Positions 2,706 through 45,579 of a DNA stretch of 64,000 nucleotides are shown in pieces. The stretch lies in contig NC_083228.1 in assembly GCF_032191835.1 (NCBI RefSeq), forward strand, positions 40,238,001 through 40,302,000. Direction: 5' to 3'. The number at the start of each line of letters is the position of its first letter. The stretch's first letter is position 1. Source of the stretch: Heteronotia binoei. Its lineage: Eukaryota. A program made the translations under genes and the position numbers. The notes beneath the pieces were generated by a model that was given only the letters and a program-made list of their open reading frames with translations, was not told where the DNA came from and did no database searches.

Positions 2706-2722
2706 GGTTCAACCGCAGGTCA
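2706..2722 (+). promoter_or_regulatory. Perfect DR5 retinoic acid response element GGTTCA-accgc-AGGTCA
   Basis: Two RGKTCA half-sites spaced by 5 nt, within the CYP26 locus. Confidence 0.7.
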
Positions 2723-4632
2723 GCGAGGGAGCCAGAGGTGACGGCGACGGCGACGCCCAAAGGTAAACACGCGCCCAGCCAGCCGGATCCCCAGGAGGCG
2801 CCGCATCCAAACCCCCCACCCACTCACCGACCGCTGCGCCAGCCAGCGCCAAGGCCCAGGAGGAGGAGGAGGAGCAGCAGCAGGGGCCGGGAGGCGCAGC
2901 CGGAGTGGCATTCAGGGTCCCAATTCCCAGCGGCCTCGAGGGGAATGGAGAACTCCGGTCTGCGCCCTGGGCTCGACAAGGTTAAACAAGCTCCACCCCG
3001 GCCCCGCAAAAGCCGCCCGGGGACTCTGGGCATCGTTCCGGTCTGTCTAGAACTTTTCACGATCTTTCTTTCCAGGAGACTCCCTCCCTTCCACGTGGGA
3101 GTCCCGCACAACACCCCTGCAAGACAGGCCAGCCTGCCAGCATCAAGGCCACCGGCCTTGAGAGAGGCGAGAGGCGAGAGGCTCCGCAGGCAGGGGAGCC
3201 CCAATCCTAGGCCGGCTCCCCTTCCCGGGGAGTCAGCAGCTGCCTGAGTAGGATTCAGAGGCGACCTCTTCATTCACCGACGTGTTTCTGCCAAAAGCAA
3301 AGCGTCAGCCTGAGCCAGTGAGTCTCTTTAGCGCGCTGGAATGAATGGAGGGAGGGGAACTAACTTCCGAGCCCCCTCCCCAACAACACGCGCCATCAGG
3401 CCTTAGGCTGGCGGCGGCGGGGGTGGGTAGGTGGGCTGCTCTTTGTTCAGACCTTTCTTCTTCTCTGCCCCTCCGCAGTCGAGTTCAGCCCCAGGCCGCC
3501 GCCCCAAACGGGTTTAACTCTTTCCCTTCCGTCCAGGTGAGCAGCCGTGTGGGTCTGAAGCGGCAGAACCAACGTCGAGTCCTCCAGCGGCACCTCCCCG
3601 ACCCCAGGTTCCTTCGAGGGGCAGGCGCCCTTTGGTCCAGCTGCCTGGAATGAAACGTCGTTGGGCTTCAAGGCGCCGCCACTGGGTTCTGTCGAAGCTC
3701 CCGAGCGAGGCGGCTGCAGCCAGACCTCCCCCCCCCCCCCGGAAGGGCTGCTCGCTCGGCGCTGGTGGATGGTCCGCAGCGGGGGCGGGAGAAGAGGCCT
3801 TCGCGCTGGCCCCGGAGGCGCCTGGTGGTTGGTGTTGCCAAAGGCGGCGCTTCCTCTTGAGCGGCTGGGGAGGAGCCACGGGAATCTTACCTCCGACTGA
3901 CCCACATGCAGCAAGCTTCCGAGAGGGCGGGGGGCTCGCCCGGCCGCTTCCAAGCGCCTCTTGCCTGGGGGCGGCTCCCGAAGACCTACCCGCTGCAGGG
4001 CTCCTTCGCCGCTCCGGAGACCGTCTCCCGCCTCCCCGTGTGGCTCTGGCTGCTTAGAATCGCCTCGCTCGCTCGCTCGCTCCGGGGCTTCTTACTCCTT
4101 CGCCGTAAGCGAGCGGAGGGAGCTGGCTGGATTCCCGGGCCTCCTTTCCAACGCAGTCCCTTCGGACGCTGCCAGGCCGGCCGCCCCTTTCCGTGCCACG
4201 GAGTGCTGCGCTGGAGGCTGGCCAAACGCCGGAGGCACGCAGCGCTCCTCTCGGGAGCCCCCAGCTCTGCAGCTGCACCAAGGGCGCCCCCGGGAAGGAG
4301 CAGAGAGCCAGCCCAGGGGGAGGCGGCGGCGGCGCTCGGCCGGTCTCTTCTGCGCCCAGACAGCAGACACTCCGGCTAGAAGGAGACGAGTCTCCCGGGC
4401 TCCTCCTGGAAGGCGGACGTGCGCTGAGAGTCTACCCAGATTCTCAGGCGGCGGGCAGGGGAGGGACCCGATTCGGATAGACGGTGGTGCGCCAGCAGAG
4501 AGAGACTGGAAACTTGCACAGGCGCAGCGGTTTTAGCGGCTTGAAATGTTTACCCAGCTGGGGGAAACTCACCTGCATCAGGTCAGATTCCTGCGCTTTT
4601 CCGCACCAGTCTGGCCCAGCGAGTTCGCTGGC

Positions 4633-4663
4633 GGGGGCGGGGAGGAGGGTTTCCCTATAAAAG
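4633..4663 (+). promoter_or_regulatory. GC box (GGGGGCGGGG) followed by consensus TATA box (CTATAAAAG)
   Basis: GC box at 4633-4642 and TATAAAAG at 4656-4663 on the plus strand. Confidence 0.45.
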
Positions 4664-4747
4664 TGGAGGAAGGGAGGGAGTGGGCCGAGAGGGGCAAGAG
4701 GGAACTGGCGAGGTGTCGTGCGCGTTCCAGAGATGGCCCCTTGCCTG

Positions 4748-4767
4748 AGGTCAAGTTCATCGGGTGA
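4748..4767 (+). promoter_or_regulatory. Composite nuclear-receptor element AGGTCA-AGTTCA-tc-GGGTGA (DR0 + DR2, overall DR8)
   Basis: Three RGKTSA half-sites in tandem. Confidence 0.6.
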
Positions 4768-4962
4768 AGCGGAAGCGATTCTCCGCTCTGTTGTTGCTTG
4801 GTCTGCTCTGTCCTGCACGAATGCTTTCGCGTGGGGCGACTGAATGGTGCTGCAAAACAAAACTAACCTTCCTCACCGGCGATCTTACAATATCTTGTGG
4901 ATTCATAAAGTCAGCTCACTTCTAATGCATGCTAGATTACCACCACCACCCCCCGCCCAGGC

Positions 4963-5135
4963 TAGCCCCATCTCGTCAGATCTCAGAAGCGAAGCAGGGT
5001 CAGTACTTGGATGGGAGACCCCCCCCCCCAGGGTCAGGAGGCGGAGACAAGCGCTGGCGAACCGCTCTTGCCTTGAAATCCCCCCTCAGGGGGGTCCCCA
5101 CCATGTCAGCTGGGGAACTGGACGGCACTTTCCAC
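4963..5135 (+). mobile_element. 5S rRNA-derived SINE (5S-Sauria-like)
   Basis: 5S head atctcgtcagatctcagaagcgaagcagggtcagtacttggatgggagacc followed by a non-5S tail. Confidence 0.75.
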
Positions 5136-6427
5136 CCCCGCCCCCCTTGACCCCGAGGGGGGAGTCCTCCTGGCTTGGGTGCCCAGCTGGATTCCAGACG
5201 AGACCCACCTACTCCGGCCCGCCTTCGTTGGCCCCTGAAGTGCAGCGACCAATCGGGGCTCAGCCCGAAGAGGCCGCCAGCCAATGGCCCGCCGACCGGC
5301 TCCTTTCTGCCCACCCCTGGAAGGAGCCGGGAGGCTCCGACTGGCGTCCGAGCGATGCGCCCCGCGGAGGGCTGTGAGGGGCAGCAGACGGCTGCAGCTG
5401 AGCAAAGCGCCGCAATTTCCAGACGCCCCCTCCCCCCCCCCCCTCAGCGTCTTCCTGTGCCTTAAGCAGCAGCAGAGACGCCCGAGCAGAAATAAAGGGC
5501 TTAATTCTTTAGCTCGAGGTCCATTCCCTTGGGAGTCAGAGCCCCATTCCATCCCTGGGACTTTGTATCTCTGGGGGGACATGCGGGGGACGGAGACCGG
5601 GAAGGTTGCGATCCACGACGCAGCTTGTGCGTGCTTTACGCGGAGGTCCATGGGTGGTCTTACTCCCAGGGGACACGAGCTGGAGGAGGGAGCTGGTGAG
5701 TGACTCCGGGGCAGCCCGAACAGCAGCCGGTGGAGGACTTTTCTCTCCTGCTGCCTGCGCTATGGGCCGAGTCTTCTAGGCAAGCCCGGGTCGGATGGAT
5801 TGCAGCAGGGGTTTGGGAGGGGGGGGGTCGATCCGGACAACGCCTTCCGCTGGCCCCCCTGAGTAATGGTGTTGAAACCGGCCTTTGCCTTCCCCTCCAC
5901 ACGCAACCGAAGCCAGGCGTGCCTTGCAAAGGCGGTTCGCTGCGCAGCGCATTGTTGCTTGTTGCTTTTTTGTTTGTTAGTTTACACGTCCACACACCAC
6001 ACCAGCAGCTGCCGATGCCCGGCAACAGAGGGAGCAGGTGCCCCCCGGAAATAAGTCTCCTTTGAATCAGTGGGCCGAGAAAGGGTTTGTAGGATTGCAA
6101 CATGACTGCTTCCCACCCCCGGGTAAAAGATGGCCACACCTTCGGAACGCCTAAAGCATCTTCGCGTCATCTGGGGTGGGAACAAGATTTGAGCCTCCAG
6201 ATGTTTAATTCCTGCTGAGGTCCATGGAGTTGACTCCCAAGAAGACAGTAACGACCAGGATCGCAACCCTAACCGCGCAGAGGACTCGAACCTGCAGTTT
6301 ACTTGAGAGAGATATATATATAAATAATTTTACAACAATCTTAACGTATAAAGCAATCAATCACATGTATCAATCAGCAATTAATTACTAAATCCATCCC
6401 CAAATTGATAAGTAACCTTCCTGGGAT

Positions 6428-6619
6428 CAGTATATCTCCTCAAATCTGTGAAGTCTTGTGAGCAAAAATTCTACTTGGTGAGCTACTGGCGTTAAAATTG
6501 TTATTGTATAAATTAATTTTCTCTGGGGCCATTTTTCCTGAGCAAAGACAAAAATATGTGAGTTGGAGACCAAAAACCTGCCAACACGCTCACAATAACT
6601 CAGCTTAGAGGGAACGCTG
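6428..6619 (-). mobile_element. Diverged second copy of the 544-728 MITE, opposite orientation
   Basis: Shares ggggccatttttcctgagc..aagacaaaaat and cagcttagagggaac with the reverse complement of 544-728. Confidence 0.75.
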
Positions 6620-7891
6620 CTTAAACCTATTATTTGACCTTACAGCTAACACAGTAAGTAACTATCGTCCTTGCATTCTTATATGCAATTTAAAACCCAC
6701 TGAAGCAGACAAGCATAGACTACATCTGACCACCCGACTCTCCGCATTTTGACTGGGAATCCAAGCCTCTGGAGGGCTCCTCTCCAGCATGTGGAGGGCT
6801 GCGTCCTCAATCCAGACTCCGGCATCGTAGTTCTTAAACTCAGACGCCCTTTCGACCCAAGCTCGCGTGTCTCCTGTGGATTCTGCCTATGGGGGACGCT
6901 CCCGGATCTCCTGACGCTGCACAGATCGAGAAACGGAGACCAATTCCGCGCTGGACCTTTAATCCTGGGTTAGCCCGGTCCCCCAAACTGACCTTCTACG
7001 CTAGAATCAGAGAAACCAACTCTACGTAGAATGTCATCTTGGGACAGGGCTAAGCAAGGATTAAAGGCCGAGTGCAAAACTGGTCTGGCATTGCCTCCCT
7101 TCTCTGTTGCCCCTGTGCTCCTTTCAGCATGGTCAGCGGGCTAGACGTGGCCTTTTGCTGCTGTTGTCGTCGTCGGTCTCCGCCTTCCCAGCCCTTCCGA
7201 TACAACATACAGATACAAATCCTACAGATCCGAGGAAGAGAGCTTGGACGCCCCAGAGGCCGGGGGAATGGGCTGGTCTTTAAACTGCTGGCAGACGAGC
7301 ACGGACGACCACCCTCCCGACTCGATCCCGCGGCCGGGCGTCTGCACAGGCCTACGCGCGCTGACCTGGCTAGGGGAAGCCCCACCGAGGAGGAGAAATG
7401 GGACTTCCTGCTGCTGCTGAGCCAAGCAGGCACCTCTCCCTGCTCGAAACCCCCAAAAGCGCCTGGGCTGGTCTCCTGCGAAGGAAGCCCCACTGCGTTC
7501 CCGTCGGGAGGCGCGGGAAGGACAATTCTAGATCCGCCTCTCCTCCCGAGTAAGCGCTGCGAGCGCCCTTCGTTCCTTCTCCAAGACGCGGCTCCCTTTT
7601 GGCCGCGATGGAAGCTCCTCGGGTTCCTTTCGCGGGAGGAGAGAGGAAGGAAAGAGGGGGGTGGGAGTCGTGGGGGTCTTTCTGGGGTGGTCCCTCCTCC
7701 GGGGGCTCCATTTCAGCTCAGGCTGACCTGGGGGCGGGGGGGGGATCCCATCTTTCCCAAGCCTCACTCTGGCCGTGCGCCCCCCCGCACGGGGGTCTGA
7801 CCTATATAACGCCCTTCCCCCCGGGACCCTGGAAGGATGGCGGGGCAGGCGCGGCGCTTTCCCGGGCCCGGGGGCCGCCCTTCCCAGGCGC

Positions 7892-7983
7892 TGACCCGCG
7901 GGCGACCCCGCTGCAGGCAGGACCGTGACATTTGCGTGAACCCGGCCGGGGCTGCCCGGCCACCTCCTTCCGCGCCAAGTTCA
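7892..7983 (-). promoter_or_regulatory. Cluster of two near-consensus DR5 RAREs plus an extra half-site
   Basis: Minus strand: GGTTCA-cgcaa-ATGTCA (7942-7926) and GGGTCG-cccgc-GGGTCA (7908-7892). AGTTCA half-site at 7978-7983 on the plus strand. Confidence 0.6.
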
Positions 7984-8108
7984 CTGCCCGCCCGCGCGTC
8001 CCCTAACGAGATGCGGGCCTCGCTGACTCGGAAGAGCGCCCTTAATTGCCGCCGCGGATGGGAAAACCCTGGATGATGCCCCAGCACTGCAGCCATCTAG
8101 TCGCCGGG

Positions 8109-9223: not shown

Positions 9224-9331
9224 GGGTGCTTTCACACACATTAAATAATGCACTTTCAATACACCTTGAAACTGGATTTTACTGTTACTTGCAAATGGTC
9301 ACCGAAGGGCATTGAAACTGTGTGAAAGTGC
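9224..9331. mobile_element. Palindromic MITE, internally deleted copy of the 13960-14091 family
   Basis: Shares cacacac.taaataatgcactttcaat with the 13960 copy. Imperfect TIRs. Confidence 0.65.
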
Positions 9332-10104: not shown

Positions 10105-10121
10105 GGGTCACTAGAAGGTCA
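10105..10121 (+). promoter_or_regulatory. Perfect DR5 RARE GGGTCA-ctaga-AGGTCA
   Basis: Consensus DR5, with additional half-sites AGGTCA at 10082 and GGTTCA at ~10170. Confidence 0.7.
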
Positions 10122-15589: not shown

Positions 15590-15988
15590 TCAAGTGTCTG
15601 CATTGTTGGGCTCACCACTTTCTCTCCCAGGCTTCAGGGGATGAAAATAGAGCTGCAGACCATCCACGGGGTGCACAATCGGCACCGTTTGCATCTTGGG
15701 GAAGTGAGGGGTGGCTAGCTCCCAGCGGGCCGTGCTGACCAGCTCAATGGCAAGCAGCTTGAGGATGACCTGGGCCAGTTCCTTGCCAATGCAGTTCCGG
15801 ACTCCCCCGCCAAAGGGGATATAGTGGAAGCGGACAGAGCCAGCTGCTTTGTGTTCCTCACCCTCTTCCTGGGGTACCCAAAAGCGCTCAGGATCAAATG
15901 TATCTGGGGAACTTTGATAGATGCTGGCAGTCTCGTGTGTGTCCCGGATACTGTACATAACACTCCATCCTTTGGGGATCTGGTAGCC
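15590..15988 (-). CDS. CYP26C1: CYP26C1 coding exon 6 (132 aa + stop; PERF and heme-binding FGGGVRNCIG)
   Basis: ctgtag|GGC acceptor, then GYQIPKGWSVMYSIRDTHET. P450 signature FxxGxRxCxG with the axial Cys. TGA at 15592-15590. Confidence 0.97.
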   Translation of the reverse strand, partial: GYQIPKGWSVMYSIRDTHETASIYQSSPDTFDPERFWVPQEEGEEHKAAGSVRFHYIPFGGGVRNCIGKELAQVILKLLAIELVSTARWELATPHFPKMQTVPIVHPVDGLQLYFHPLKPGRESGEPNNADT

Positions 15989-16521
15989 CTACAGGAAGGA
16001 AAGAAAAGGAAATCAGCATTGGAGACGGTGGGAGGGGGACCTGCTGAGAACACTCACCACCATTTGAGCTGCCAAGTCCTTATATTTGAGCTGCAACTCT
16101 CAAGCCCCACAGATGTTAGTAGGTGGCTGATATTTCAGAGATTTATGGATCAGAGTTGAAGGACTCTTACCCTGAAAGTTAAGTTGTTTAATGTAGTGGT
16201 CCAAGTAAGGAGGAGTAGAGGATAGATAATAGATTTTGGAAGAACAGTTTTAAAAGTAAGGAAACTGCGGCAAAGTTCCTTCAGGCAGCCCTTCTTATAT
16301 GTAGTACTATAGTAAACTAAGCTATTTTATAATTATTTAATTCATAACTTTTAAAGATTGGAACTGAAAGATGGAATATGTTTTTTTTTACATATGTATG
16401 CTTTATTTCAGCATTTTCTTTTATCCTATACTTTTCTACACTAACAGTTTTATAATGCCAATAAAGGAAATTGCTATGCATAAGTAAGGATGCTGGCACT
16501 ATCATTCACATCATTTGATAC

Positions 16522-16654
16522 NNNNNNNNNNNNNNNNNNNNNNNNNNNNNNNNNNNNNNNNNNNNNNNNNNNNNNNNNNNNNNNNNNNNNNNNNNNNNNN
16601 NNNNNNNNNNNNNNNNNNNNNNNNNNNNNNNNNNNNNNNNNNNNNNNNNNNNNN
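16522..16654. other. Assembly gap (133 N) in CYP26C1 intron 5
   Basis: Run of N. The flanking exons join in frame, so no coding exon needs to be hidden here. Confidence 1.
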
Positions 16655-17282
16655 GAGCCACTGTCCAAGAAGCAAGCTCTTATAAAAATGTATCCGTTCA
16701 TTGTAACCATCTTTTTCTATCCTGCTGACTTCCTAATAAAATATGCTCTGATACAGAAAACTAAGTGACCTATCTACAACTAAGTGCTTTATAATTCCCC
16801 ATCAATTGGACCATAACCTTTGTCCTGCCACAACAGTTAATATAAGTTAAATAGTTGGTCAGAGGTCTTTAATTTTTCCAGACCGGAGACTTTCCTTTGG
16901 CTCCAGCATGCACTCCAAGACATAGCAGAAAGTCACATGACATCACTACCATGTGACACGAAGAGGAGGAGTCAATGTGTTTGAACTTGCCTGTGCTAAT
17001 TAGTCATCCTCTTCACCACTGAATTATCTAATCTTGCTGTGCATGGGCAAACAGAGGTACAATGGATGGCACTCTTGCTCTCTACACATGTTCTAGCAGC
17101 AAATAGCTGCCCCAGAAAGGCGGGTGGGGTGCTGCACTGCACCCAAAAGTCCTGACCCAAGGGTTGAAGACCTTGTCTGGCTGTAACCCTGCTCTAATTA
17201 GCAATAGGTCTGAGCAGAGACACTTTGGTGACTAGATAATGTATTAAAACTGAACCCTACCAATGTGAGAGTCAATGCCGGG

Positions 17283-17410
17283 TAGTGCTTAGACTAGGAT
17301 ATGGGAGACTCAAGTTTGATTCCCACTTGGACACAGAAGCTTGCTGGGTAACCTTGGACCAGTCACACTCTCAGGCCTACCTACCTCACAGGGTTGTTGT
17401 GAGGAACTCT
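17283..17410 (+). mobile_element. Older tRNA-derived SINE
   Basis: B box caagtttgattcccac and core gggtaaccttggaccagtcacactctc...cctacctcacagggttgttgtgagga. Confidence 0.7.
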
Positions 17411-17823
17411 GGAGTCCCTTCCTTACTCAATGGCTTATTGACATTTGACAGGGCTTTTTCTGAGCACCTTTCTGTTCACAAAGCTATGCTAAACAGTTAT
17501 GTGCAACTGAGAGGGCCCCCATTCACTACCATGCCTCCCTTGTTCCACTCCCATGGATTGCACTCAGTTGCCCACTGCCCCTCACAAGGGTGTGCCCACT
17601 GGGTCTTTTGCGTGCCCCCAATGGCAACTAGGATCCCTCACTGTCATAACTCACTCCCCCCCACCACCAAAACTCTGAAGCAAGAGAAACTCATGGGCCA
17701 CAGTACCTCTGGGAACTCCCTTCCCATCAGCCGCAGCAGCAAAAGTGCTTCTGATACCCCTACAGAATGGTGAGGATGGGTCTTGTGCAATCTAGCCCAA
17801 GCCCACCCTACACTTTCCACACA

Positions 17824-17969
17824 CAGGGCCAGCCCTGCAATTGCCTAGGCCGCCAGCCTTCTGGGGGCACCAAATTGGGCACCCTCCATGTGACTTGGTG
17901 ACGTTATCAGTGTGTGTGGGGGGGGCAGAAGTTAGCCTTGCTTAGGGTGCCAGTCTACGGCTGGCCCTG
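17824..17969 (+). mobile_element. hAT-type MITE in CYP26C1 intron 5
   Basis: Perfect 11-bp TIRs cagggccagcc / ggctggccctg. The flanks tccacaca / tctgcgca are consistent with a CpG-decayed 8-bp TSD. Confidence 0.8.
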
Positions 17970-18018
17970 TCTGCGCAGATCTACAAAAGGAATCTTTGCC
18001 AAAAGACCTGTAACTCAC

Positions 18019-18480
18019 ATCCAACTCAAAAGTCTGCAGGGCTGTCCTGTAGCCTCCAGACACCGGGGGCAGCAAACGGAGCACTTCCTTGATAACACAG
18101 TCCAGGTAGCGCAAGCGGCACATCTTCTCCAGGGTCAGGGAAGACTGGCAATCGCACTCAGGTCTCATGTGAGGCAAGGGAGAAGCTCTCCCCTCCCCTC
18201 TTGGGTCTGTCCCTGCTTTCCATCCCAGCCTGGGTGGAAGAGGTGCCTCAGAGTCCTTGTGTTGAACCTCTTGTTCACTGACTGTCTTTCGGCAGGCCTG
18301 TTGGCTTGTTGGAGATCGTCCCGTGATGAAGCAACAGCACTGCCTGGGGAGGTCATGGGATGCCAGCTCTTGCTGGATCTTTTTGATAGCCCAGGGGTGT
18401 TTAAGGAGAAGGAGAATCAGAGAAGTGCTGGCACTGGCCGTCGTGAAGAAAGCCGCAAATATCAGCTCGATTGCAGACTC
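18019..18480 (-). CDS. CYP26C1: CYP26C1 coding exon 5 (154 aa; I-helix AAFFTTASAS, K-helix EVLR)
   Basis: ttgcag|GAG acceptor and GAT|gtgagt donor. The FAAFFTTASAST I-helix is the CYP26C1 form (CYP26B1 has AAYATT, from recall). ExxR motif present. Confidence 0.96.
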
Positions 18481-18671
18481 CTGCAAGGCAAGGCACCAAG
18501 AGACATCTGTGAAAGTGCTTTTTTTCATGCAATGTGCTTATTCATATTTAATGACTCCAGTCCCATACTGTTTTCCTTCATTGCTCAAAGCAACAGAACT
18601 CATTTGTGTTTTCAATTCAAGATCCTTTTTAATTTTTTTTTTAATTTTTGTATTTATATATGCATTTGCAC

Positions 18672-18843
18672 TACGGCTGGCCCTAGATTGTCTAGGATCC
18701 TAGACAAGGCACACAACTTCTGGCACACACAGCCCCCACGCTGATATCATCACCAAGTCACATGGGGGCACCCAATTCGGCACCCCCGGAAGGCTGGTGC
18801 CCTAGGTAATCACCTAGTTTGCCTAATGGCAGGGTCAGCCCTG
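18672..18843 (-). mobile_element. Same MITE family in CYP26C1 intron 4, inverted relative to 17824-17969
   Basis: Its reverse complement aligns to the intron-5 copy at ~84% over a ~62-bp core (catgtgacttggtga etc.). Confidence 0.8.
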
Positions 18844-18844
18844 A

Positions 18845-19050
18845 GTGTGTGTTTGTGTGCACCTGGAAGTCATTGTGACCTCTGCGGGACTGGAGGATAT
18901 TCAGAGATGTGGCTGAATAAAGCCTGCCCCTGCCTCCTGACTGCTGGTATTCCACGAAGGTCTCCCATCCAAGTACTTGCCAGAGTCAGCTCTGCTCAGC
19001 TTCCAAGGCCTGATAAGATCAGGCTTGCTTGGGCATGTCAGAGCCAACTC
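18845..19050 (-). mobile_element. 5S rRNA-derived SINE
   Basis: Reverse complement of the 5S head (ggtctcccatccaagtact...agcttcc...gatcaggcttgc) with a (CA)n tail. Confidence 0.7.
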
Positions 19051-20587
19051 AAGATCCTGGATAGAACTTCAGATTGCAATGTAACATCATGAGAATTTGG
19101 GGAGGATGCACCAAAGACTGCAGATGAGGATCAATGTACAATGGGAAATTCAAGGGAGAACATAGCTGAGGTTTGAGTTTGAGACCAGAGCTGTGACTCA
19201 ACATAATATAGCTGCTGTTGGATTACTACTGCAGCTGTAAATTCTTCACTGCAGCATGAACTGACCTAGTTGAGCCACTTGGCTACAGTTCTGCCTTATC
19301 CAGAAAAAATAAATGTTCCAAAAGGGAAAGACACTTGTTAGTTGCAAGAAATCCAAAGAATTTATTAATCCATTTCCAGGCAGGCTTCTGTTATTCTTAG
19401 CCAGAGAATATCATTGGAACTCTGATACCAGACAGGTTGACTCTCTAGGAAAAACCAGTGCCTCCCTTATTTATTTATTCCGTATAAGTAAAGAAATGTT
19501 CTGAGTTAGCCATGTGGTTTTTCAGCAACCCCCTCAAGTACTTCAGTGAAATTTCCAGTTGGACATGTACAGAATCATCACCAGGAAAGAAAAAAGGGCA
19601 GCTGTCCAGCAGAAGGTAGTTGAAGCTTAGAAAGCAAAGCAAAATGGGTGTAGACACATACAATCGCAATACCCACAGAAAATTGAAAATCTTACTGGCT
19701 TTGGCTCTGAAACTCTTATAATGCTCTAAAGATTGGCTTATTTAATTCCTTTCCCAATGGCATTCAGAGTTGTCCTTGGCTTTGTTGAGATATGCACAGA
19801 CTCCTTTAGAGAAGTCACAACACATTGCTGATCCACAGGCCTCATATACATATTTCATTATCTGAACTCCTTTTCCTTCTTCCTGGCTTATGTCATATGA
19901 AGACTTGCAAGCTGTAACCCTCTTAAAATCCCACTCATGGTTCTGGTTAATATTGGGATTCTGGAAGCTTTTATTCTTGACCATTCAATTGGATTTCAAT
20001 TGGAGTATTGTATAATCCAAGTGAATGCCAATCAAACAACCTTTTTTCCCCTGGCTTTCATACAGCATTATCACTCTGATGTGGTTTTGTGGTTGGGTCT
20101 GGCAAAAGAGGCATCCTATTATTGCAAGTTAACAGGGGAAGGAACATGGATTGTTAACAGGGGACGTTAACATGGATTGCAGCCAAAGTTGCTTCCCTAA
20201 CTGTGCTTAGACCTGACCTACCTGAAATGGACTGCGTGTCCAATTGCATATTTAAAAGAAAATAGATTTTCTTCAAGGCTATTTGCTGCTGTTGTGCCGT
20301 ATTCATTTCAAAAAGAGAATCCAAGGCAATAAAACCGGCATGATTTCTGTTCAACACATTTAGAAGTGTGGTGGGAAATGGAACAGAATAAACAATCCCA
20401 CTCTGAACTACTGGCAACAAATATCCGAACTCCTAGCCCTGGATTCAACTCAAGACATAAGCAGGAGGTCAGTCAATTTATAGCTGAACATCAAATCTAT
20501 TGCCTGGAAGTTTGCCACAGACACACAATCTTCTTCTCCACTGATTAAACTAAAAGGAATACCATTCTAGTCTTCAACATGTCTCAC

Positions 20588-20925
20588 TGGGGCCATGGCT
20601 CTGAGGCAGAGCATCTGCCTTGCATACAGAAGGTCACAGGTTCAATACCCAGCACTGCCAGCTAAAAGGCTCAAATAGCAGGTGATAGGTAAGACCCTGG
20701 AGAGCAACCAGTTGGAGCATTATTGTTATTTCTATAGTATAGTAGATAATGTTGACCTTGGACAGACTGACTACAAATCAGCTTCATGGCTGCACACACT
20801 CCAAGATGCCTGTATAATTAACTGAAGTAGATTATTGATGATACTGCTGATTGACAGAATTTAGTAGACAGTATTGACTTTGATGGGCCAATGGTCTTGA
20901 TTCAGTATAAAGCAGCTTCATGTTT
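20588..20925 (+). mobile_element. tRNA(Ala)-like SINE with duplicated tail
   Basis: Head gagcatctgccttgcatacagaaggtcacaggttcaatacccagc, with repeated agtaga..a..tgac..tg tail segments. Confidence 0.65.
20631..20644 (+). promoter_or_regulatory. Perfect DR2 element AGGTCA-ca-GGTTCA inside a tRNA-derived SINE, CYP26C1 intron 4
   Basis: Consensus DR2 overlapping the SINE B-box region. Confidence 0.45.
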
Positions 20926-20951
20926 TAATGACAATTTGGATCTATCTAAGA

Positions 20952-21229
20952 GAAGCCTCAAGGCACAAAGTGTTAAAGCTGCAGTCCAAGCTCTCTGCTC
21001 ACAACCTGAGTTCTATCTGGGGGAAGCTAGGTTCAGGTAGCCGGCTCATGGTTGACTCAGCCTTCCATCCTTCTGAGCTCAATAAAATGAGTACCCAGCT
21101 TGCTGGGGGGGAAGTGTAGATGACGGGGGAGGCAATGGCAAACCGCCCCACAAAAAGTCTGCCGTGAAAACGTCATGATGCGATGTTGGATATGACTGGT
21201 GCTTGCACAGAGGACTACCTTTACCTTTA
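20952..21229 (+). mobile_element. Sauria SINE
   Basis: caggtagccggctcatggttgactcagccttccatcc...ggcaatggcaaacc (BovB-like tail)...actacctttaccttt. Confidence 0.85.
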
Positions 21230-21761
21230 AGAGAAGCCTTATACTACTGGCAATGCAGTGAACAACATTATTTTTCCTCCTGATTCTTGCTCTCAGCATC
21301 CACGAGATTCCTTGTCACAACTTTCCTACTCTGATTCTTGAGGATTCTTGACCTCCCAGAGGCCGAGTTATGATTTAAATATGATACTAGTATATTATCT
21401 GTTATCCCAAAATGATCATGATGTTATAATAGAGTTCTAATGTTGCTTGTGTTAAAAGCACAAGGTGAATTCCGGAGATGAACATATGACCCTGCTAAGC
21501 TTCAGAGATCTTACGAGATTGGACTTGCCTGGACTGTCCAGCTCAGGGGAGGCACTCCATGACTAGCTGAAATTCAACATGGGGAGACCAAGGACCACCC
21601 TTAGGTAGGCTGGAAAGGATCCTGACATACATTCATAGTTCAGAGCATGCAGAGCAGACTGGAAGGAGAATGGGAGAGCTGGAATAGGCTGCAAATCCCT
21701 GCACATGGTCAGGGGCACTTTTATGACTTCTACACTACTTATGGTCTGAAGCAAGGGTTAC

Positions 21762-21917
21762 CTTCAGCTCCTGCATGGTCAGTTCTTTGCCGTGCTCCTT
21801 GGTGCTGTCTATGATGAAATCCAGAGCATCACTATCAGCCTTTGCGTCCTTCCGCTGCAGTTTCTCTAGGATGGCCTTTTCCATGTACTGGTGCAACAGG
21901 TCCCGGGCCTTAATTCC
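21762..21917 (-). CDS. CYP26C1: CYP26C1 coding exon 4 (52 aa)
   Basis: cag|GGA acceptor and AAG|gtaacc donor. Translation GIKARDLLHQYMEKAI...HGKELTMQELK. Confidence 0.96.
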
Positions 21918-22465
21918 CTGGCGGAAACAAACAGGGTCATTTGGGGGTAGGTGTAGCGGCAAGAAAGGAAATCCTTTTCATATGGAGTCTTGCATCCAAG
22001 GAAGCCCAGGTCAAATCAAGCAAGGCTGTGCTTCACCCTGTCCCGGATAGCCCAGGATTCTCTCATTGCCAGAAACAGGCCAAATGGGCTTTCGGCCAAC
22101 CCTGCCCTGAGAAGTTTGCATCCAGTGACACCTTTCAGACCAACCAAGTTTTATTGGGGGTGAAAGCTTTTGTGTGCACACACTTCTTCAGGTTGCAAAA
22201 GAAGGGTTTAATTTTAAAGGCAAAGCCACAGAAATCGGGAGCGGAGCCGATCCAAGTCAGCGCCGCAGGGGGCCACAACGTCTTCCTTCGCCAGGGAGGC
22301 GTTTCTCCTCTTGCAGAGCAGAGGGCGGGGCTGGAAGGCGCGCTTTGCCGGCTACCTGCCGGCTGTTCTTGGGGATCTGGAGGGATCGCTCGGTCTCTGA
22401 CTGGATCTCTGGCTCAGGCACCCACACTCTAGCCCCCCCCCCCGCCACTCCCGCCCCGCCGGTAC

Positions 22466-22741
22466 CTTCCTGAGGCCGCTGAAGGGGAGGTTGAGGGGCA
22501 GCGAGAAGAGGTTCTCCACCAGCTGCTCGAAGGCGCGGGCCAGCTCAGCGAAGCGCTGCTCCTCCAGGCGGAGCCCCAGCAGGACGCGAGCCGCTACGCG
22601 GAAGGTCAAGGCCTTGGTGGCCGGGTAGACCGCCACCGCCCCCGCCGCCCGGCACCAGCCGCCCACCTCCCCTCGCACCAGCCGCTGCACGCCCGGCAAG
22701 TAGCTCTCCAGCGCCGAGCGGCTGAAGACGCGCGCCAGGAG
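22466..22741 (-). CDS. CYP26C1: CYP26C1 coding exon 3 (92 aa)
   Basis: ctgcag|CTC acceptor after a (CT)n tract and AAG|gtaccg donor. Translation LLARVFSRSALESYLP...FEQLVENLFSLPLNLPFSGLRK. Confidence 0.96.
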
Positions 22742-22743
22742 CT

Positions 22744-22745
22744 GC

Positions 22746-22778
<33 letters not shown>
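22744..22778 (-). repeat. (CT)n microsatellite forming the polypyrimidine tract of CYP26C1 exon 3
   Basis: A plus-strand (GA)n run directly abuts the ctgcag acceptor. Confidence 0.9.
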
Positions 22779-22869
22779 CCGTTGGGGAGCTCCGGAAAAG
22801 AAGGGGGCGCCCGGCAGCCCATGGGCAAGTCCCTTCTCCAAAGAGGGAGGGCTGGGGAATCCTTCCCCT

Positions 22870-23103
22870 AGGCAAATCCTTTCACTCAGGCCCAGGGAAA
22901 TGCCGGTGGCCACTTTGGGGTCAGTCAGCCGTTTTCCTCCAGGCCACTTTGGCCAGAGATCCTGGAGGTTTTTCCCATCTTCTGGGCACGGAGCGGGGGA
23001 CGCTGGGGGTTGGGGGAGGGGGGCATTTGTGAATTCCCAGCATTGTGCAGAGGGGGTGGACTAGAGGGCCCTGGAGGTCCCTTTTAACGCTACGATTCTA
23101 TGA
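22870..23103 (+). mobile_element. CR1 LINE 3' end in CYP26C1 intron 2
   Basis: Homologous to 14620-14790; ends ctggaggtccc...gattctatga. Confidence 0.75.
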
Positions 23104-23783
23104 AATCCCCCCAAGCCCCAGCCCACCCCTTTTCCTTAGGACCAAGCAAAAAGAAGAGGGCGGGCCAGCTTCCAGGCAGCAGGCTGCAAACAGGAGGGCG
23201 GAGACCAGGCAGGTAACTCACTGCTGGCCTTTATGATTTCCAAGAGTTCTCCCTCGAGGCGTCTGCCCCCGCCGCCTCATCCACCTCCCCGCACAATCCC
23301 CAACAGCCTTGCCTCGGAGTCAGCCCCGGGGCGGGGAGAGGATTCGGAGCAGACGCCTTGAGGAGCCTCCTGCCTGCCACCAGCGCAGTCGCCAGCCGAG
23401 TCGCCCCCTTCTATGTTCGCGGATGTCACTGGAGTTTAGCGAGGTGTCCCTTGGCTTCGGGTGGCCCGCTCGGTTGGCGATGGCCTGGCTTCCCAGTTCA
23501 AGAGGGCTTACTTAGGCCGATCTCCTCAGACCCCGGGAGCCAGGAAGGTGGTCCGTGGACCTGGGCAGGCCTTGGATGCGAGACCTCCAAGGAATCCCAG
23601 AGTCACCGTGCAGACGACCCGACGGGGCCCCCTCCCCTTCACTCCTGGAAATATCTTCTCCCTTTTTTCCCTACCTCCCCCCCACCCGTCCTTTGTCTTG
23701 GACATCCAGCCTGACGGAGTTCTGGAGCCCTGCAGAGGTTGGCGCTATTTGGCGTCATGTGGGCTGATCCCCACAGAAAGATC

Positions 23784-24517
23784 CCCTCATCTCTCTAATT
23801 CCTAAGACAGACCAGGGTACCACCGAGCAAGTGCAGAGTATCCCCCCCGCCCCGTCCTGCTTAGGAACCGCAGCTCCTGCGCTGCACTTGTGTTAGATCG
23901 GAACCCATGACTGCCTCCCGTTTTGGGCTCCGGTCCTGCTCTTTTTGGCTGCGTCGGCTGACTGCGCTGGAGCCAGGTCGCAGGCGCGGCAGTGGTAGAG
24001 CCCCAGCTTCCGCAGGACTGTACCACCAGCCCGCTTGAACTGTCAGCCGCGCCTGCTGTGGGGGCTGCCTTTGCCTTCGGGGGCTGGCTGAAGAGGAGGA
24101 GCCCTTCTCGCCCTCCCCTCTCCTCCCCGGGTCCCGCGGCTCTCCCCGGCGAGCGGGGCTGCCTTGCCTACCTTGCGGCGCTGGCGGTGGGTGTCGGCGC
24201 GGGCGTTGAGGAGGGTGTGGGGGCCCAGAAGGATCTGGGTGCTGAGGGGCCACTGGGCGTCCACCAGGCTGTGCTCGCTCAGCAGGATCCGCCGCACGTG
24301 CTCGGCGCCGCTCACGCGGATCACCGGCTTGCCCAGCAGGTGAGTCTTGAACACGGAGCCGTATCTCTGCCGCCGGGAGCTGTGGAAACTGGAGCCCTGC
24401 GGAGCGGGGGGGGGGGGGGGGGAAGGGGGGAGAGAGAGGGCTGAAGCCTTGGCCCCTCCCTCCCTCATCTGTCGAATTCATAAGCTAGACCAGGGTACCA
24501 CTGAGCAAGTGCAGAGT
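23784..24517 (+). repeat. 56-bp direct repeat pair flanking CYP26C1 exon 2 (23784-23839 and 24462-24517)
   Basis: ccctcatct.tc.aattc.taag..agaccagggtaccac.gagcaagtgcagagt, 50/56 identical. Confidence 0.9.
24172..24396 (-). CDS. CYP26C1: CYP26C1 coding exon 2 (75 aa)
   Basis: cag|GGC acceptor and AAG|gtaggc donor. Translation [45 protein letters not shown]...HRQRRK. Confidence 0.96.
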
Positions 24518-24688
24518 GCCTCCCCCACCCCCTCCACAGCCCCTGCGCTGAAGCCGCAGAAGAGACTCTGCTTCCAAGGCTCAGGGGACCAGAACGAGCA
24601 GGTAGAGCACCTGTTTCTCAGCGCGAAGGAACCGCTGGAGAGCTGGGCTTTGATGCAGGGAAGGACCCGGCGGAGATGCTTTTCACTC

Positions 24689-24890
24689 ATTCATTTGCGC
24701 CCCGCCTTTCTCCCCAAAGTGGCTTCCACTGTTCTCTTCTCCTCCGTTTTATGCTCACTCCAACCCTGCGAGGTAGGCGGCCAGGCGGAGAGAGCGTGAC
24801 TAGCCCAAGGTCACTTGACCAGTTACCATGGCAGGAGCGGATTTCGAACCCAGGGCTCCCAGCCTCTAAACCAGCACTCTACACTGGCTT
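24689..24890 (-). mobile_element. tRNA-derived SINE in CYP26C1 intron 1
   Basis: Reverse complement of a SINE head (B box gggttcgaaatcc) and body caagtgaccttgggctagtcac...cctacctcgcagggttgg. Confidence 0.7.
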
Positions 24891-25170
24891 GCTTTACATC
24901 TAGAACTTCCCTGAACCCCCGTCGGTCCAGCTACAGAAAGGTGGAAACGGAGGATCCCAGCCCCTGGTCCCGGTGGGAACCAGCCCCATCACCCTCTGGG
25001 TGCGACTCCCTCTGGGCTGGGGAAGGGGTGGCCAGAGCTGCGAGAGAAGGAGGCAGAGCCGCAGCTTTCGAATCCAGCGCTGCCTGGACGGAGCTGAACT
25101 GGGACTCCCGGAGGCACCTCGAGACCACCAGAGCCCAGCCTCCCGGGGCTTCTCCCCGCTCCCCGCTCAC

Positions 25171-25380
25171 CTGGACCAGCCAGTGCAGCGTCTCGCCGAA
25201 GAAGGGCCAGCCCATGGAGCCCTTGGGCAGGGGCAGGGCGCAGGCGCGGTCCCGGCTCCAGCTCCAGCGGAGCGCCCACAGATGCCGCGCCAAGGCCAGC
25301 AGGAGCCCCAGCGCCACCGCGGCGGCCAGCCCGGCCTCCAGCCACCACAGCGCCTCCCCCGCCTCCGACGGCGGCACCAT
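25171..25380 (-). CDS. CYP26C1: CYP26C1 coding exon 1 (70 aa; N-terminal membrane anchor and PLPKGSMGWPFFGET proline-rich hinge)
   Basis: ATG at 25380 in good Kozak context (gggATGg). Translation MVPPSEAGEALWWLEAG...LPLPKGSMGWPFFGETLHWLVQ is CYP26-type. GT donor at 25170-25169, phase 0. Confidence 0.93.
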
Positions 25381-39724: not shown

Positions 39725-42614
39725 CCTAGACCTTTGTTACCCTAGAAAAATTTTGCACTTTAAGAAGCTACTGGACTTGAATTTCATTTTAATACTACAG
39801 ACTCACGTGGGGTACTAATGTTGGGATTTTGTGTAGGTGATAGTATCTAACAAACCAGCAATCAGAAAAGGAAGAGACAGCAAAGCACAAGAGCAAATAA
39901 TATTATAGTAACACCGAGCGGGATAGAAGATGCTCAAAAGACACAATATTCAGGCATTGTGGCTTCTTAAAGATGGCAGGTTTTGTATATCTATCTTTAC
40001 ATGGCTAAATATGAAAGGCACATTAAAAAGAAGTACAGATATGTAGAAGTAATTGAAGTACGTATATTGCCCATTTCAGTTTAAATCGCAAAACAAACCA
40101 CAGTATGCTACATACTGCAGACATCAAACACAGGGCTAGAATAAAATTGAATTGCACATATTCTCTGATTGCGCAAGATGGACAAGTATCATCTCTCCAT
40201 AATTACAGATTTCATAGTATGAAAGTATAATAATAAGGTTTTTTCCTGGATAGCAAGACAGCTAAATTCAATCACAACATTCATTCAAAAGTTTCAAATC
40301 TGGAAGAGCAATTTCTTCTTTCATTTATTTATCTCTTTAATTCTCTGGAATAGCCTGGCAGCAGCTGTATTTTCTGCCAATCCTCTTAAATCAGGACAAA
40401 TTGTACTGTTGAACATTGTTAAAAGTCTGCTGAAATAACAAATTTTTAGGCAATCCTTTTGTCTGGGGGGTGCTGTTCAAACCAACAGGGCTTCATAAAG
40501 TTATCATTTCCCTGTCCCACTTTAATTAAAAGTTTAGAGCTCAAATATGAACAGCTGCCTGAACTTTTCCACTTGCGAAGGGGGCTAGGATATTGGGGGG
40601 GGGGGGGACAAAATAGGTATCAGACATATTACATACTAGCTTAAGAATCTCATCCAAACTCCTGATTTCTGCACTGCATAAAAACCGGGTTTGAAAAACA
40701 GCTTCAAATAATTTTAAAGAATGGTTGAATCTGGCCGTTTCTTTACCTCTGTAATATTTTATGCCACTCTGATGTCAACAGGCTTTGAAGGGTACGACTC
40801 TGTTTAGGATTATGCTGTTAATTTGATAAAGGAACTTTCTCCTCACGTGAGTATGAAAAACACAGATTCAACAGAAGTTGTTGCAAGGGAATCTGCTCCA
40901 AGATCCAGGCCCCCAATCTGAAACTTTTTTTTCCAGTTTTAAATTACTTTATCACAGTTTGTTCACATACACAGAAAGCAGATAAAGATACTATATGCAA
41001 TACATGTACATTTGATTATCATAGAACTGGGTCACTTTTTAACATTATAAAGTCTAACAAGAATCTTAAGGGAGAAATTTAACTAAACCCCCTTAACAGT
41101 TTTTTTTTAATGGACTGAGCAGCAGCATCATGGAAGGAACTCAAAAGATACTATAAAATAAATATACACTTTAACATTTATATTTAAGGGCTTTTATCCT
41201 GTTTTTCTACCACAAAGGCATTCAGTGCAGTTATCAAATTCCAATTCCAATTCCAAAAACCTTTACTGGCATAACTGCTATCAAAATCAACAATCTGAAA
41301 CAATAAAAAGAGAGAGATCTAATTAAAACAAATCCAATAACAAAACCCTAAATAATTAGATGGGGCTGGCCTTGGGAAAGGAAAGGGCCTTGATTTGTAT
41401 ATTAAACACCTAATCTATCCAGGAGAACTGTGATTTTCTTGCAGTAGTTTTTGTTGTGTGATCTGCAGAGATGTGGATAATCCTGAAGACTGGATCAGAA
41501 ACCTGACTGGAACAGTAATGATTGTTCTAGTATGAAATCTAGTTATCTAATGCTTGTTTTGGTATGAAAGAGAGAGAGGTTAGGCTCAGTCCTGTTTCCA
41601 AGGCATTAAGTGAAAGGTCTAGTGATGTATCACTTTCTCTGGGAAATTCAAGGGGGGGGCAATTTCCCATAAGAAATCTGAGGCATACAACATTCTGTTT
41701 TTCAGTTAACTATATTTAACTTGCTACTAAGTGTACTCTAAGACAGCATGCAGCCTCAGGGCTACTTCTAAGAATATGCAATTAGGAACAAGCTGTCAGT
41801 TTGGCATATTTGCAATTTCTAAGTGCAGTTCCCATATTCAATAGGTACAGCAGTCTTCTGGGTAAATTAGATGAGAACTTCAGAAATGCTATAGTTTCTA
41901 TGCATAATAGGCTGGCTTTCTTTATTGTAAAATTCCTCATATTTCCCTATGTTTGGAAAATATATCAGTATTTTACTCCCCAAAATTTTCTTATTCCATG
42001 ACATTTTCAGTCTTTATTAAAATAATATCTAACAAGCCCCAGGATGAAAAAGAAATAATAAAGTGTTATTTGATGCTACACATTAAAAGACGGCGGTGTG
42101 AGGCTTGGGGTGAGGTAGAGATTCAAGCCTTGGATCAAACCACCATTTTTAAAATTTTGCTTGTTTCTAACACATGAATGCCTGAGAATTTATTTTCACT
42201 GCCCAATAATGAGTTAATTCCTACTTTTTGGAGCCTCAAGGAGCTAGGGCAGAAGCCAGCACCCTATCAAAAGAACAAAAGGATATGTGGGAAGACACTT
42301 ATGTGAGGAATTCGCATGTAGCTGACCCCACCATACATGCCCCACTATTTGAACCTAATTCAAATCTTCAAATAACCAACTCAGCGATTTTGCTGCAAGA
42401 TAAAAAGGAGGCATTTAGTCAACTCAATTTGAGTAACCTTTGTGCTTCAGGATATCCCTTCCTGTGATTAGTTTCTTTCAATCTCACTTGGAAAATGTGT
42501 GTGTGTGTGTGAGAGAGAGATGTGTGCATGAATCTAGTTCAGATGATCCATTACCTATTGCTGTCACAAAGATTTTGAATGAACTTTCCAGTTATTCTTC
42601 AGATTCAGGTCATC

Positions 42615-43379: not shown

Positions 43380-43600
43380 TAACAGAATTGGTAAGTGGGT
43401 TTGGACTGCATGCAGAAAATGCAATGAAAATTGCCAATGTTAGCATGTCAGCCATAACACGGTTTTTTAATAGTAGAGGCAATCAATTTGTGCCAACAGA
43501 CATAAAGATCTTTAAGACTAAAGTGATTCCACAATTACTTTATGGTATCCCAATCTGGATCCGTGCTTTTGACCTGTACATTACAAACATCCCGTACAGC
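43380..43600 (+). mobile_element. Degraded LINE RT fragment
   Basis: KIFKTKVIPQLLYGIPIW resembles the post-RT V..LLYG..W motif of non-LTR retrotransposons. Confidence 0.5.
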
Positions 43601-44420
43601 AAAGAGACAATTTGCCTTCAATTAGTTATTTACTGCACCAACTGAATTATTGTTGACATAAGGACTACTACATATTTTCCTTTGCTTGCAGCCTTTTATA
43701 ATGGACTTGTGTGTTCTGTCTGGCATCAGAAAGACATTTGATAAACTCGTGGTGTTATATTTTTCAATTAGTGGGCTTCATTTTTGGTTTTTACCAGCCA
43801 GACACACCCTGGTCCACTGAGGCCAGCAAAGAAGTCTCAACAGGATTCCAGCATAGTTTGGAAAAAAAATTCTCCCCCCTCCCCCAACCCAATAACGTTT
43901 TTGGGGAAAAAAATTAACCAATTAAGAGTTTTTGAAAACTGGAAAGCTTGCACACTATATTATGCTATTTTGCTTGGTCTTAATAAAAAGGCATTACATG
44001 GGTTTTCTTTTTGGATATTTGCACAACTTTCCTTGAACCTGAAATTGTACCATATGCTAAACAGCTTATTAACCTGTAATCAACCAGATACTCCTAGCCC
44101 TGACTGCATGTGTAATTACCTTTTCAGCACAATTTGCCTGATAAACATGTCAGAACACTTGCCGCTTAGTCTGTTTCAACAGGTAAACGCTGCCTTTCCA
44201 CAGCCTTAGGGCATAATTAACAGAGGGAGGGAAAGACACACACACACAGAGAAGCTGATTCAACGAAGCAGGAGTTCACAGCATGCAACCTGCCAAGGCC
44301 TATTTCATGGCTCGCCATGCTTGCCTGAGCACTTATTGAGTTCCAGCCTGCTGTGACAGGGCAAGGATGGCAAACTCTGAAGAACAACTTTTTGAATGAG
44401 GACTGCCACATGAACTTCAG

Positions 44421-44546
44421 GGAGGGACAGGCCGAGTACTATACTGAACACTTTCAGAGGAGAGTAGTGGTCTACAAAATTCAGGAGGGACAGGCTGAGG
44501 CCTATACTGAACACTTTCAGCGGGGAATAGTGGTCTACAAAATTCA
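44421..44546 (+). repeat. 63-bp tandem duplication (2 units)
   Basis: ggagggacaggc.gag..ctatactgaacactttcag.gg.ga.tagtggtctacaaaattca occurs twice. Confidence 0.9.
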
Positions 44547-44877
44547 GTAGCACCTTAAGGACCAACATCTTCCAGGGTATAAACTTTCAGGAGTGAAGAA
44601 ACCTCACATGGCAGGCATCTCTTTAACTGGGCCATTAGGAATGATAACAGGAGAGAATCAAGTAGAAAATTTACCTATCTGGCATTCTGATCTTAAACAC
44701 AGTTATGTTTTCATCATATCACACTCATTTGCCCTATGTTAATTAACTGGAAGCAACTAACTGCTGCTTCCTATATTCTTAAACGTTTTATGGCATACGT
44801 AAAATTTATTCTATATCTAACTGTGTATGTGAAAGAATAGCTAGAGTGCATTAAGGGGTAACTAATACATACAAGCC

Positions 44878-45075
44878 CTGATAGCTCAGGATAGTCCGAT
44901 CTCGTCAGATCTCAGAAGCCAAGCAGGGTGGGCCCTGGTTAATATTTGGAAGGAAGACTACCAAAGAATGCCAGGGTTGTGACGCAGAGGCAGGCAATGG
45001 CAAACCACCTCTGAACATCTCATCTTGAAAACCCCATGGGGTTGCCATGTCAGCTATGACTTGATGGCAAAAAAC
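44878..45075 (+). mobile_element. 5S rRNA-derived SINE with BovB/Sauria-type tail
   Basis: 5S head ccgatctcgtcagatctcagaagccaagcagggtgggccctggttaa followed by ggcaggcaatggcaaaccacctct. Confidence 0.8.
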
Positions 45076-45565
45076 CACAACAACATACTAAGCAATCTTG
45101 ACTATGTGTGTGTATTTGAGCATCACTGCGATCCAGTGCACAGTTGTCAGAAAATAGGAGCCCTTGGAGTAGATCGAACTTTATTTTCCAGGAAATATGT
45201 TTAGGGTAAGCATGCTATTTTCTTTGGCAGGTAACTGGGACTCATCAAAATTGAGAAGATTTTGGCTGCAGCCCAACAAAGCTTGTAAAGTGTATAGCCC
45301 TTCACTATGGGGAGTGCGAAAAGAAATCCCTACCTGACCTCTGGATAACCCAAACAGGAGATTAGCCCATTTCCAAGCAAAGTAAGTTGTCACACTGTTA
45401 GGCCAATTGCTTCCATTGACATTTTGCATAAACATCTTACGCAGGGTGATCAGAAAGGACTGTTATGCCATTAACTTTTTTTTTACTCCCTTCTTTCTTT
45501 CATTCTTTCTTTCTAATACCTAAGCTTTACAGAATAAAGGCCTTTCTGAATTAGGGATAACAAAA

Positions 45566-45579
45566 GGGTCAAAGGGTCA
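45566..45579 (+). promoter_or_regulatory. Perfect DR2 element GGGTCA-aa-GGGTCA in the EXOC6 intron
   Basis: Consensus DR2 in apparently non-repeat AT-rich sequence. Confidence 0.4.

Follow-up and report, generated by a model that had tools for sequence, protein, structure and literature searches.

Introduction

Induction of CYP26A1 by retinoic acid (RA) is a textbook negative feedback that shapes embryonic RA gradients. The 64,000-nt stretch of Heteronotia binoei DNA analyzed here (NC_083228.1, positions 40,238,001 to 40,302,000; the whole stretch is called the window, and positions are counted from its first letter) contains several direct repeats (DR) of the half-site RGKTCA, which a preliminary description regarded as a locus-wide array of RA response elements (RAREs) for CYP26A1 and CYP26C1. 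The question raised by this locus is whether such an array exists and, if so, which of the repeats belong to it. We find that the excess of repeats is probably an ancient array of DR5 elements, i.e., half-sites 5 bases apart, upstream of CYP26A1, with four members in the window (7892, 7926, 10105, and 2706; two perfect, two with one mismatch), and that the other repeats are transposon by-products or unsupported singletons.

The mammalian CYP26A1 promoter has a proximal element, R1/RARE1, and distal RARE2, RARE3, and RARE4 ~2 kb upstream (Loudig 2000, 2005; Zhang 2010; via PMC7151129, PMC9249609), and multiple cooperating RAREs at this gene are already known (PMC7151129, PMC9249609). Conserved DR5s occur >10 kb from CYP26A1 (Lalevee 2011, cited in PMC7151129), elements shared with CYP26C1 have already been suggested (PMC7151129), and a distal Cyp26a1 enhancer of mouse embryonic stem cells has two RAREs (PMC13738024). 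In the amphioxus CYP26 cluster, 12 DR5s and 1 DR2 are bound by RAR/RXR in vitro (PMC5247814).

Results

All of the repeats previously listed (2706, 4748, 7892-7942, 10105, 20631, and 45566) were found at their coordinates, and our scan added a sixth perfect repeat, the DR0 at 53985 (Table 1). Counts were compared with a background of 2000 dinucleotide-preserving shuffles made within 500- or 2000-base blocks. Half-sites as such were not enriched in the window (154 observed vs. 142 +/- 11 expected), and perfect pairs at all spacings from DR0 to DR10 numbered 6 vs. 1.86 expected (P ~0.015). Perfect DR2 and DR5 pairs together numbered 4 vs. 0.33 expected (P 0.0005-0.001), and with the classical prior of DR1, DR2, and DR5 the figures were 4 vs. 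0.5 (P 0.002). In a decoy control on the real sequence, RGKTCA was the only one of 720 position-permuted motifs to give >=4 DR2 and DR5 pairs. The clear excess previously claimed for the four perfect DR2/DR5 sites was thus borne out by both composition-matched shuffles and decoys; the expectation then used, 0.12 per spacing, was a little low (0.16-0.17 here).

Most of this signal came from one end of the window. Positions 1-15592 contained 2 perfect DR5s vs. 0.039 expected (P 5e-4) and 5 DR5s with <=1 mismatch vs. 1.08 expected (P 0.0055), while the other 48 kb showed no excess (3 perfect repeats vs. ~1.4 expected). The motif excess is real but local to the DNA upstream of CYP26A1, and the notion of a locus-wide array did not hold: sites within or upstream of CYP26C1 lie in DNA resembling a short interspersed nuclear element (SINE), in the tail of a long interspersed nuclear element (LINE), or in AT-rich DNA. 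The six perfect repeats share the + strand; the two-sided chance of this is ~1 in 32, and since the conserved sites differ in orientation relative to CYP26A1, we take it as chance.

Contigs for comparison were found by single-exon queries with the last CYP26C1 exon and then with bird CYP26A1 exon 1. They included three bird-like contigs (L002, L003, and L006), Marmota monax (L004), a second, non-human mammal (L010), and a teleost-like fish (L011); the first three are called bird-like from the fit of their CYP26A1 exon 1 to the chicken protein. Three reptile contigs (L001, L008, and L009) hold CYP26C1 or CYP26A1 exons and end short of the conserved elements and of window 1-2700. In L002, L003, L006, L004, and L010, CYP26A1 exon 1 shares the strand of CYP26C1 and comes 3.7-4.5 kb after it, and R1 stands ~135-180 bases before the CYP26A1 ATG in all five. 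The intergenic DNA holds blocks colinear with positions 10162-9991, 8577-8528, 7950-7878, and 2741-2703 of the window. Since these four blocks are colinear, order and orientation across the assembly gap at 8109-8510 are fixed, and CYP26A1 is placed to the left of the window. Indeed, the window, previously thought to hold both CYP26A1 and CYP26C1, contains CYP26C1 and the 3' end of EXOC6 and no CYP26A1 exon, with CYP26C1 alone recovered by six-frame motif scans. L002, L003, L004, L006, L008, L010, and L011 all have R1 (AGTTCA-N5-AGTTCA within ~170 bases of the ATG), and repeat and motif scans found none in the window; a place to the left is therefore expected for it too, so that CYP26A1 exon 1 and R1 would lie, we infer, just left of position 1.

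Apart from the 2706-type element in mammals, the other species have a DR5 at the matching columns of each block that holds a flagged site (alignments A1-A5, A10, and A11), and the four conserved elements hold the 5-base spacing in every species bearing them. Over the four element sets, variable columns made up 2/32 of the fixed half-site positions, 6/16 of the degenerate R/K positions, and 11/20 of the spacer positions (Fisher P 1.4e-4), a pattern that would be expected under selection on the motif itself. As judged from these alignments, the four DR5s have been retained at the motif level over hundreds of millions of years.

The two DR5s at 7.9 kb belong to a stretch (7878-7990) that aligns with the marmot cluster at 12978-13051 (1975 bases before the ATG), with L010 7869-7957, with the birds, and with L011. 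Orthologs of the 7892 site are perfect DR5s in all other species (AGGTCAcaagcAGGTCA in birds, GGGTCAcaggcGGGTCA in marmot and L010, and AGGTCActagcGGGTCA in L011), and the non-consensus ATGTCA half of the 7926 site is invariant from fish to mammals. The lone half-site at 7978 does not vary among the five species of alignment A11 and fits RARE4, the "half" element, and the three sites together fit the classical distal RARE2/3/4 module. Just upstream, a block at 8528-8577 has a core of the TAAT type together with CGACCT, which resembles a half-site and reads TGACCC in birds; by blastn it is 84-86% identical to L002, L003, and L006, and a similar stretch occurs in L011 at ~560-620.

The 10105 DR5 is embedded in a noncoding element (9991-10162) that matched the three bird-like contigs at 76-77% and L010 at 77% by blastn. 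Its counterparts are GGTTCActacgGGGTCG in birds, with 1 mismatch, and the perfect GGTTCAttaagGGGTCA in marmot and GGTTCActaagGGGTCA in L010, which lie at -3.36 kb and -3.33 kb of the ATG, respectively. A DR2-like AGGTCAggAGGGCA at 10082-10095 corresponds on the minus strand to the invariant CCTCCTGACCT, found once per locus in the bird-like, marmot, and L010 loci, and an AAGGTGRATC motif is also kept in the block, which holds additional half-sites as well. A homeobox-type CTTTAATTAGC at 9992-10011, inside AATGACTAACTTTAATTAGC, is identical in the window and L002/L003, one base off in L006, and not in marmot. The element lies between both genes; its distance from the CYP26C1 stop is 5.5 kb.

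For the 2706 DR5, a blastn block at 2703-2741 corresponds to L002 13376-13414 and L003 10780-10818. The counterparts are GGTTCAagcgcGGGTCA in L002 and L006, GGTTCAagcgtCGGTCA in L003, and GGTTCAaacgtGGGTCA in L011; they lie ~0.77 kb upstream of the bird CYP26A1 ATG and, on the same strand and in the same position, at -750 in L011. The 2706-type DR5 was absent from marmot and L010, the two mammals examined. The classical description, "three and a half RAREs within 2.2 kb" (PMC7151129), includes neither it nor the 10105-type DR5. The earlier suggestion of many RAREs beyond the classical set thus stands for these two, and the 7892-7942 pair instead appears to be the classical distal module.

The DNA between CYP26C1 and CYP26A1 is >15.6 kb here (1-15592) vs. 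3.7-4.5 kb in birds and mammals (bird counterpart, L002 10289-14168); the intergenic DNA of the window is 3.5 to 6 times longer than that of birds. The array is spread over >=7.4 kb of CpG-island DNA vs. ~1.6 kb in birds, and the distance from the distal module to the 2706-type DR5 is 5.2 kb of CpG-island DNA vs. 0.87 kb. The island itself (2000-8108) has a GC content of 0.61 and a CpG observed/expected ratio of 0.72, and no tandem repeats were found in 1-12000. Neither of the assembly gaps (8109-8510 and 16522-16654) touches a flagged site. The first is flanked by the conserved blocks 8528-8577 and 7878-7950, with bird order and strand retained, and the second falls in the last CYP26C1 intron, whose flanking exons (18013-18133 and 15627-16009) are in bird/marmot order and strand. 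Both mammals also have the perfect DR2 GGTTCAcaGGGTCA, with one-mismatch DR5s on its flanks, ~1 kb downstream of CYP26A1 (L004 19327-19340, L010 14186-14199), a place that corresponds to DNA outside the window.

Transposon-borne RARE-like repeats exist, e.g., the DR2 elements of primate Alu, and the repeats at 20631 and 53985 are like them: at 20631 what is probably a SINE B box gives the GGTTCA half-site, and 53985 is in a LINE tail. The 20631 DR2 is in CYP26C1 intron 4 and has the B-box-like GGTTCAATACC as its second half-site. Positions 20591-20660 gave a weak full-length tRNA match (19.2 bits, E 0.29), and ARAGORN found nothing on the SINE; the site is probably inside a tRNA-derived SINE head, and its context appears akin to a squamate SINE consensus. 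Two GGTTCA half-sites of the window, at 20639 and 42673, have a B-box-like GRTTCAAnnCC context. Two copies of a tRNA-derived SINE, 79% alike, were seen at 20947-21168 and 32860-33120, and the only everted RGKTCA pair (an ER1 at 32946) is within the SINE copy at 32.9 kb. The 53985 DR0 is in the decayed 3' coding tail of a LINE (alignment A9); tblastx of 53700-54350 against the LINE at 61012-61254 gave 65% over 81 aa (E 6e-49), by which match the site is transposon-borne. No other copy in the window bears the same repeat as 20631 or 53985.

The composite at 4748 recalls the DR0/DR2/DR8 high-affinity RARE AGGTCAgaAGTTCAAGGTCA of Moutier 2012 (quoted in bioRxiv 10.1101/2021.03.18.435967), in that the three half-sites of 4748-4767 are spaced by 0 and 2 bases and its outer pair by 8. 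However, its spacing order is reversed, its third half-site is GGGTGA, and no conservation was found: the CYP26C1-CYP26A1 intergenic DNA of the birds and mammals examined has no counterpart. A search for relatives of the open reading frame (ORF) spanning 4748 gave no match. On the + strand, a GC box GGGGCGGGG and a TATA-like CTATAAAAG occur at 4634-4662, ~90 bases before the composite, and no gene or conserved counterpart was found near them (4620-4700). We considered the + strand TATA at 4655 as an inverted CYP26A1 promoter and rejected it, as neither R1 nor exon 1 is nearby. The 45566 DR2 lies in AT-rich DNA ~20 kb upstream of CYP26C1, probably within an EXOC6 intron, outside the reach of every comparison sequence, and looks like a local 8-base duplication. 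Conservation of each site, which had been proposed as a check, was found at 2706, 7892, 7926, and 10105; 4748 and 45566 had no conservation support and are left as unsupported singletons, and 53985 and probably 20631 have a transposon context. No conserved RARE could be tied to CYP26C1: the only window site within the gene (20631) is probably SINE-borne, and the CYP26C1 gene regions of L002, L003, and L004 contained no perfect repeats.

CYP26C1 itself occupies ~15.6-25.3 kb of the minus strand (15593..25333) with a full set of CYP26C1-type exons, as judged from motif scans, the ORF list, and blastn, which matched the exons in L002, L003, L004, and L007. Relatives of the last CYP26C1 exon carry PF00067. 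The EXOC6 3' end is on the same strand, ~3-4 kb upstream of the CYP26C1 start; 29949-30086 matched Pfam Sec15_C with 30.1 bits vs. a cut-off of 28.3 (profile positions 310-348/348), and 29126-29230 had a coding-like conservation pattern (alignment A6). The minus strand order is EXOC6 3' end, CYP26C1, and the long CYP26A1 upstream region. The last EXOC6 exons and the CYP26C1 start share one 8-kb CpG-rich stretch, and 28313-28351 is a conserved block of the 3'-untranslated-region-end type with an AATAAA-like signal. Pfam scans of 20 long ORFs in the window gave no match. An open LINE ORF2 of 950 codons, of endonuclease/reverse-transcriptase type by eye, is on the minus strand at 60721-63570, with decayed 3' tails of related LINEs at 39444-39725 and 53700-54350.

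Table 1. Repeats, conserved noncoding elements, and genes of the window
Feature	Position	Strand	Sequence	Evidence
Perfect DR5, antisense to CYP26A1	2706-2722	+	GGTTCAaccgcAGGTCA	blastn, alignments A3, A10
Three half-sites, AGGTCA-AGTTCA-tc-GGGTGA: DR0, plus DR2 to GGGTGA; outer pair DR8	4748-4767	+	AGGTCAAGTTCAtcGGGTGA	
One-mismatch DR5, sense to CYP26A1	7892-7908	-	GGGTCGcccgcGGGTCA	alignments A2, A5, A11
One-mismatch DR5	7926-7942	-	GGTTCAcgcaaATGTCA	alignments A5, A11
Lone half-site TGAACT (minus-strand reading), inside an invariant sequence	7978-7983	-	TGAACTTGGCG	alignments A5, A11
Conserved noncoding block just upstream of distal module, immediately right of assembly gap	8528-8577	-		blastn, alignment A8
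Amniote-conserved noncoding element	9991-10162	-		blastn, alignments A1, A4
Perfect DR5	10105-10121	+	GGGTCActagaAGGTCA	
Perfect DR2	20631-20644	+	AGGTCAcaGGTTCA	
Perfect DR2	45566-45579	+	GGGTCAaaGGGTCA	
Perfect DR0	53985-53996	+	GGGTCAGGTTCA	
CYP26C1, approximate exon blocks	25153-25333, 24170-24403, 22462-22769, 21758-21920, 18393-18483, 18013-18133, 15627-16009	-		bird contig match
P450 heme motif, sole one in window	15785-15814	-		motif scan, six frames
EXOC6 (Sec15), last two coding exons	29126-30086	-		Pfam, conservation pattern

Discussion

The window stretch 7878-7990 has the architecture of mammalian RARE2/3/4, a TGAACT half-site and then two DR5s, and by orthology a cooperative role in RA induction is expected for it. 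The two differ in that the window DR5s have one mismatch each, the module is >=7.9 kb from the gene vs. ~2 kb, and R1 is outside the window; moreover, the 2706-type and 10105-type DR5s are not among the described mammalian elements. Since the orthologous mammalian elements behave so, a regulatory role may be proposed for the window DR5s. By analogy with the human and mouse elements, RAR/RXR heterodimers would sit on the conserved DR5s, a rise in RA would lead to coactivator recruitment and cooperative activation of CYP26A1, and CYP26A1 would degrade RA and so close the negative feedback.

Several points weigh against an ancient DR5 array. Neither CYP26A1 exon 1 nor R1 was seen adjoining the window, and their leftward position comes from colinearity. 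The identity with classical RARE2/3/4 rests on position, architecture, and reviews. One mismatch is present in each window copy of RARE2/3, and one also in the bird counterparts of the 10105-type element. A motif scan located the fish counterpart of 2706, whose flanking DNA aligns only weakly. The test of column variability carries some bias, some orthologs having been recognized with the help of the motif. Lastly, 4748 and 45566 are still slightly above chance when the conserved and transposon-borne sites are removed.

The array resembles that of the amphioxus CYP26 cluster in its many DR5s, conserved between species and spread around RA-degrading genes, and amphioxus and vertebrates have the proximal AGTTCA-N5-AGTTCA in common. 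However, each of the three amphioxus genes has its own element set, whereas here all conserved elements lie in the DNA upstream of CYP26A1, with no such element found for CYP26C1. The distal mouse enhancer and the far DR5s make it clear that RAREs outside the 2.2-kb promoter serve CYP26A1, in agreement with the general idea of the preliminary description. From its mm10 coordinates and the position of the gene, the mouse enhancer is presumably ~90 kb distant, on the other side of Cyp26a1 and outside both the CYP26C1-CYP26A1 interval and the window. Any novelty would be modest, namely the 10105-type and 2706-type DR5s outside the classical 2.2-kb description, and these may have been detected elsewhere before.

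A more far-reaching proposal, which we offer tentatively and regard as doubtful, is that these two conserved DR5s are undescribed RAREs, the 10105-type possibly serving both genes, the 2706-type ancient and lost in mammals, and that 4748 is in addition a squamate-specific RARE driving an RA-inducible upstream transcript. The 10105 element could serve both genes since it lies between CYP26C1 and CYP26A1.

It is improbable that all perfect and near-perfect repeats from 2.7 to 45.6 kb form one RA feedback landscape for CYP26A1 and CYP26C1. The window-wide DR2/DR5 excess does survive shuffles and decoys, but there is no excess beyond 1-15.6 kb, the 53985 site and probably the 20631 site are in transposon-derived sequence, and 4748 is without a counterpart in the other species examined. 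The 10105 element and the CYP26C1 stop are 5.5 kb apart, shared elements were proposed earlier (PMC7151129), and the 13 RAREs of the amphioxus cluster bind RAR/RXR in vitro (PMC5247814); yet bird and mammalian CYP26C1 regions lack a perfect repeat, and CYP26C1 is reported to be down-regulated or variably regulated by RA (PMC5247814, PMC7151129).

We likewise think it unlikely that the conserved repeats, while regulatory, act mainly for other nuclear receptors (e.g., NR2F/COUP-TF or HNF4alpha) and are not specific RA sensors. The 5-base spacing typical of RAR/RXR is retained in all four elements in every species, and in human cells RARalpha binds the orthologous RARE2/3/4 cluster, which mediates induction by RA (PMC9249609), although HNF4alpha has been reported on the proximal CYP26A1 RARE (PMC10218549) and the DR2-like pair and homeobox-type motif of the 10105 element suggest combinatorial input. 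Chance, i.e., a degenerate motif scanned over 64 kb at several spacings chosen partly post hoc, is a very improbable source of the excess even with half-sites not enriched and the DR0-10 total at P ~0.015 only, for the four sites align with orthologous DR5s in species up to fish, RGKTCA alone of the 720 permuted motifs reached its count, and the CYP26A1-upstream interval gave P 5e-4; it is refuted for the four conserved sites and may account for 4748 and 45566.

An ancient DR5 array upstream of CYP26A1 is thus the reading we prefer. A plain motif count over this locus mixes conserved elements with transposon-derived look-alikes. Control of CYP26A1 has been studied mostly on the 2.2-kb mammalian promoter; the alignments show a distal RARE module conserved from fish to squamates and point to two further DR5s under motif-level constraint, of which the 10105-type is common to all amniotes examined and the 2706-type is absent from two mammals. 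If the more far-reaching proposal is true, loss of the 2706-type element would mean that the RA sink is wired differently in mammals than in other vertebrates.

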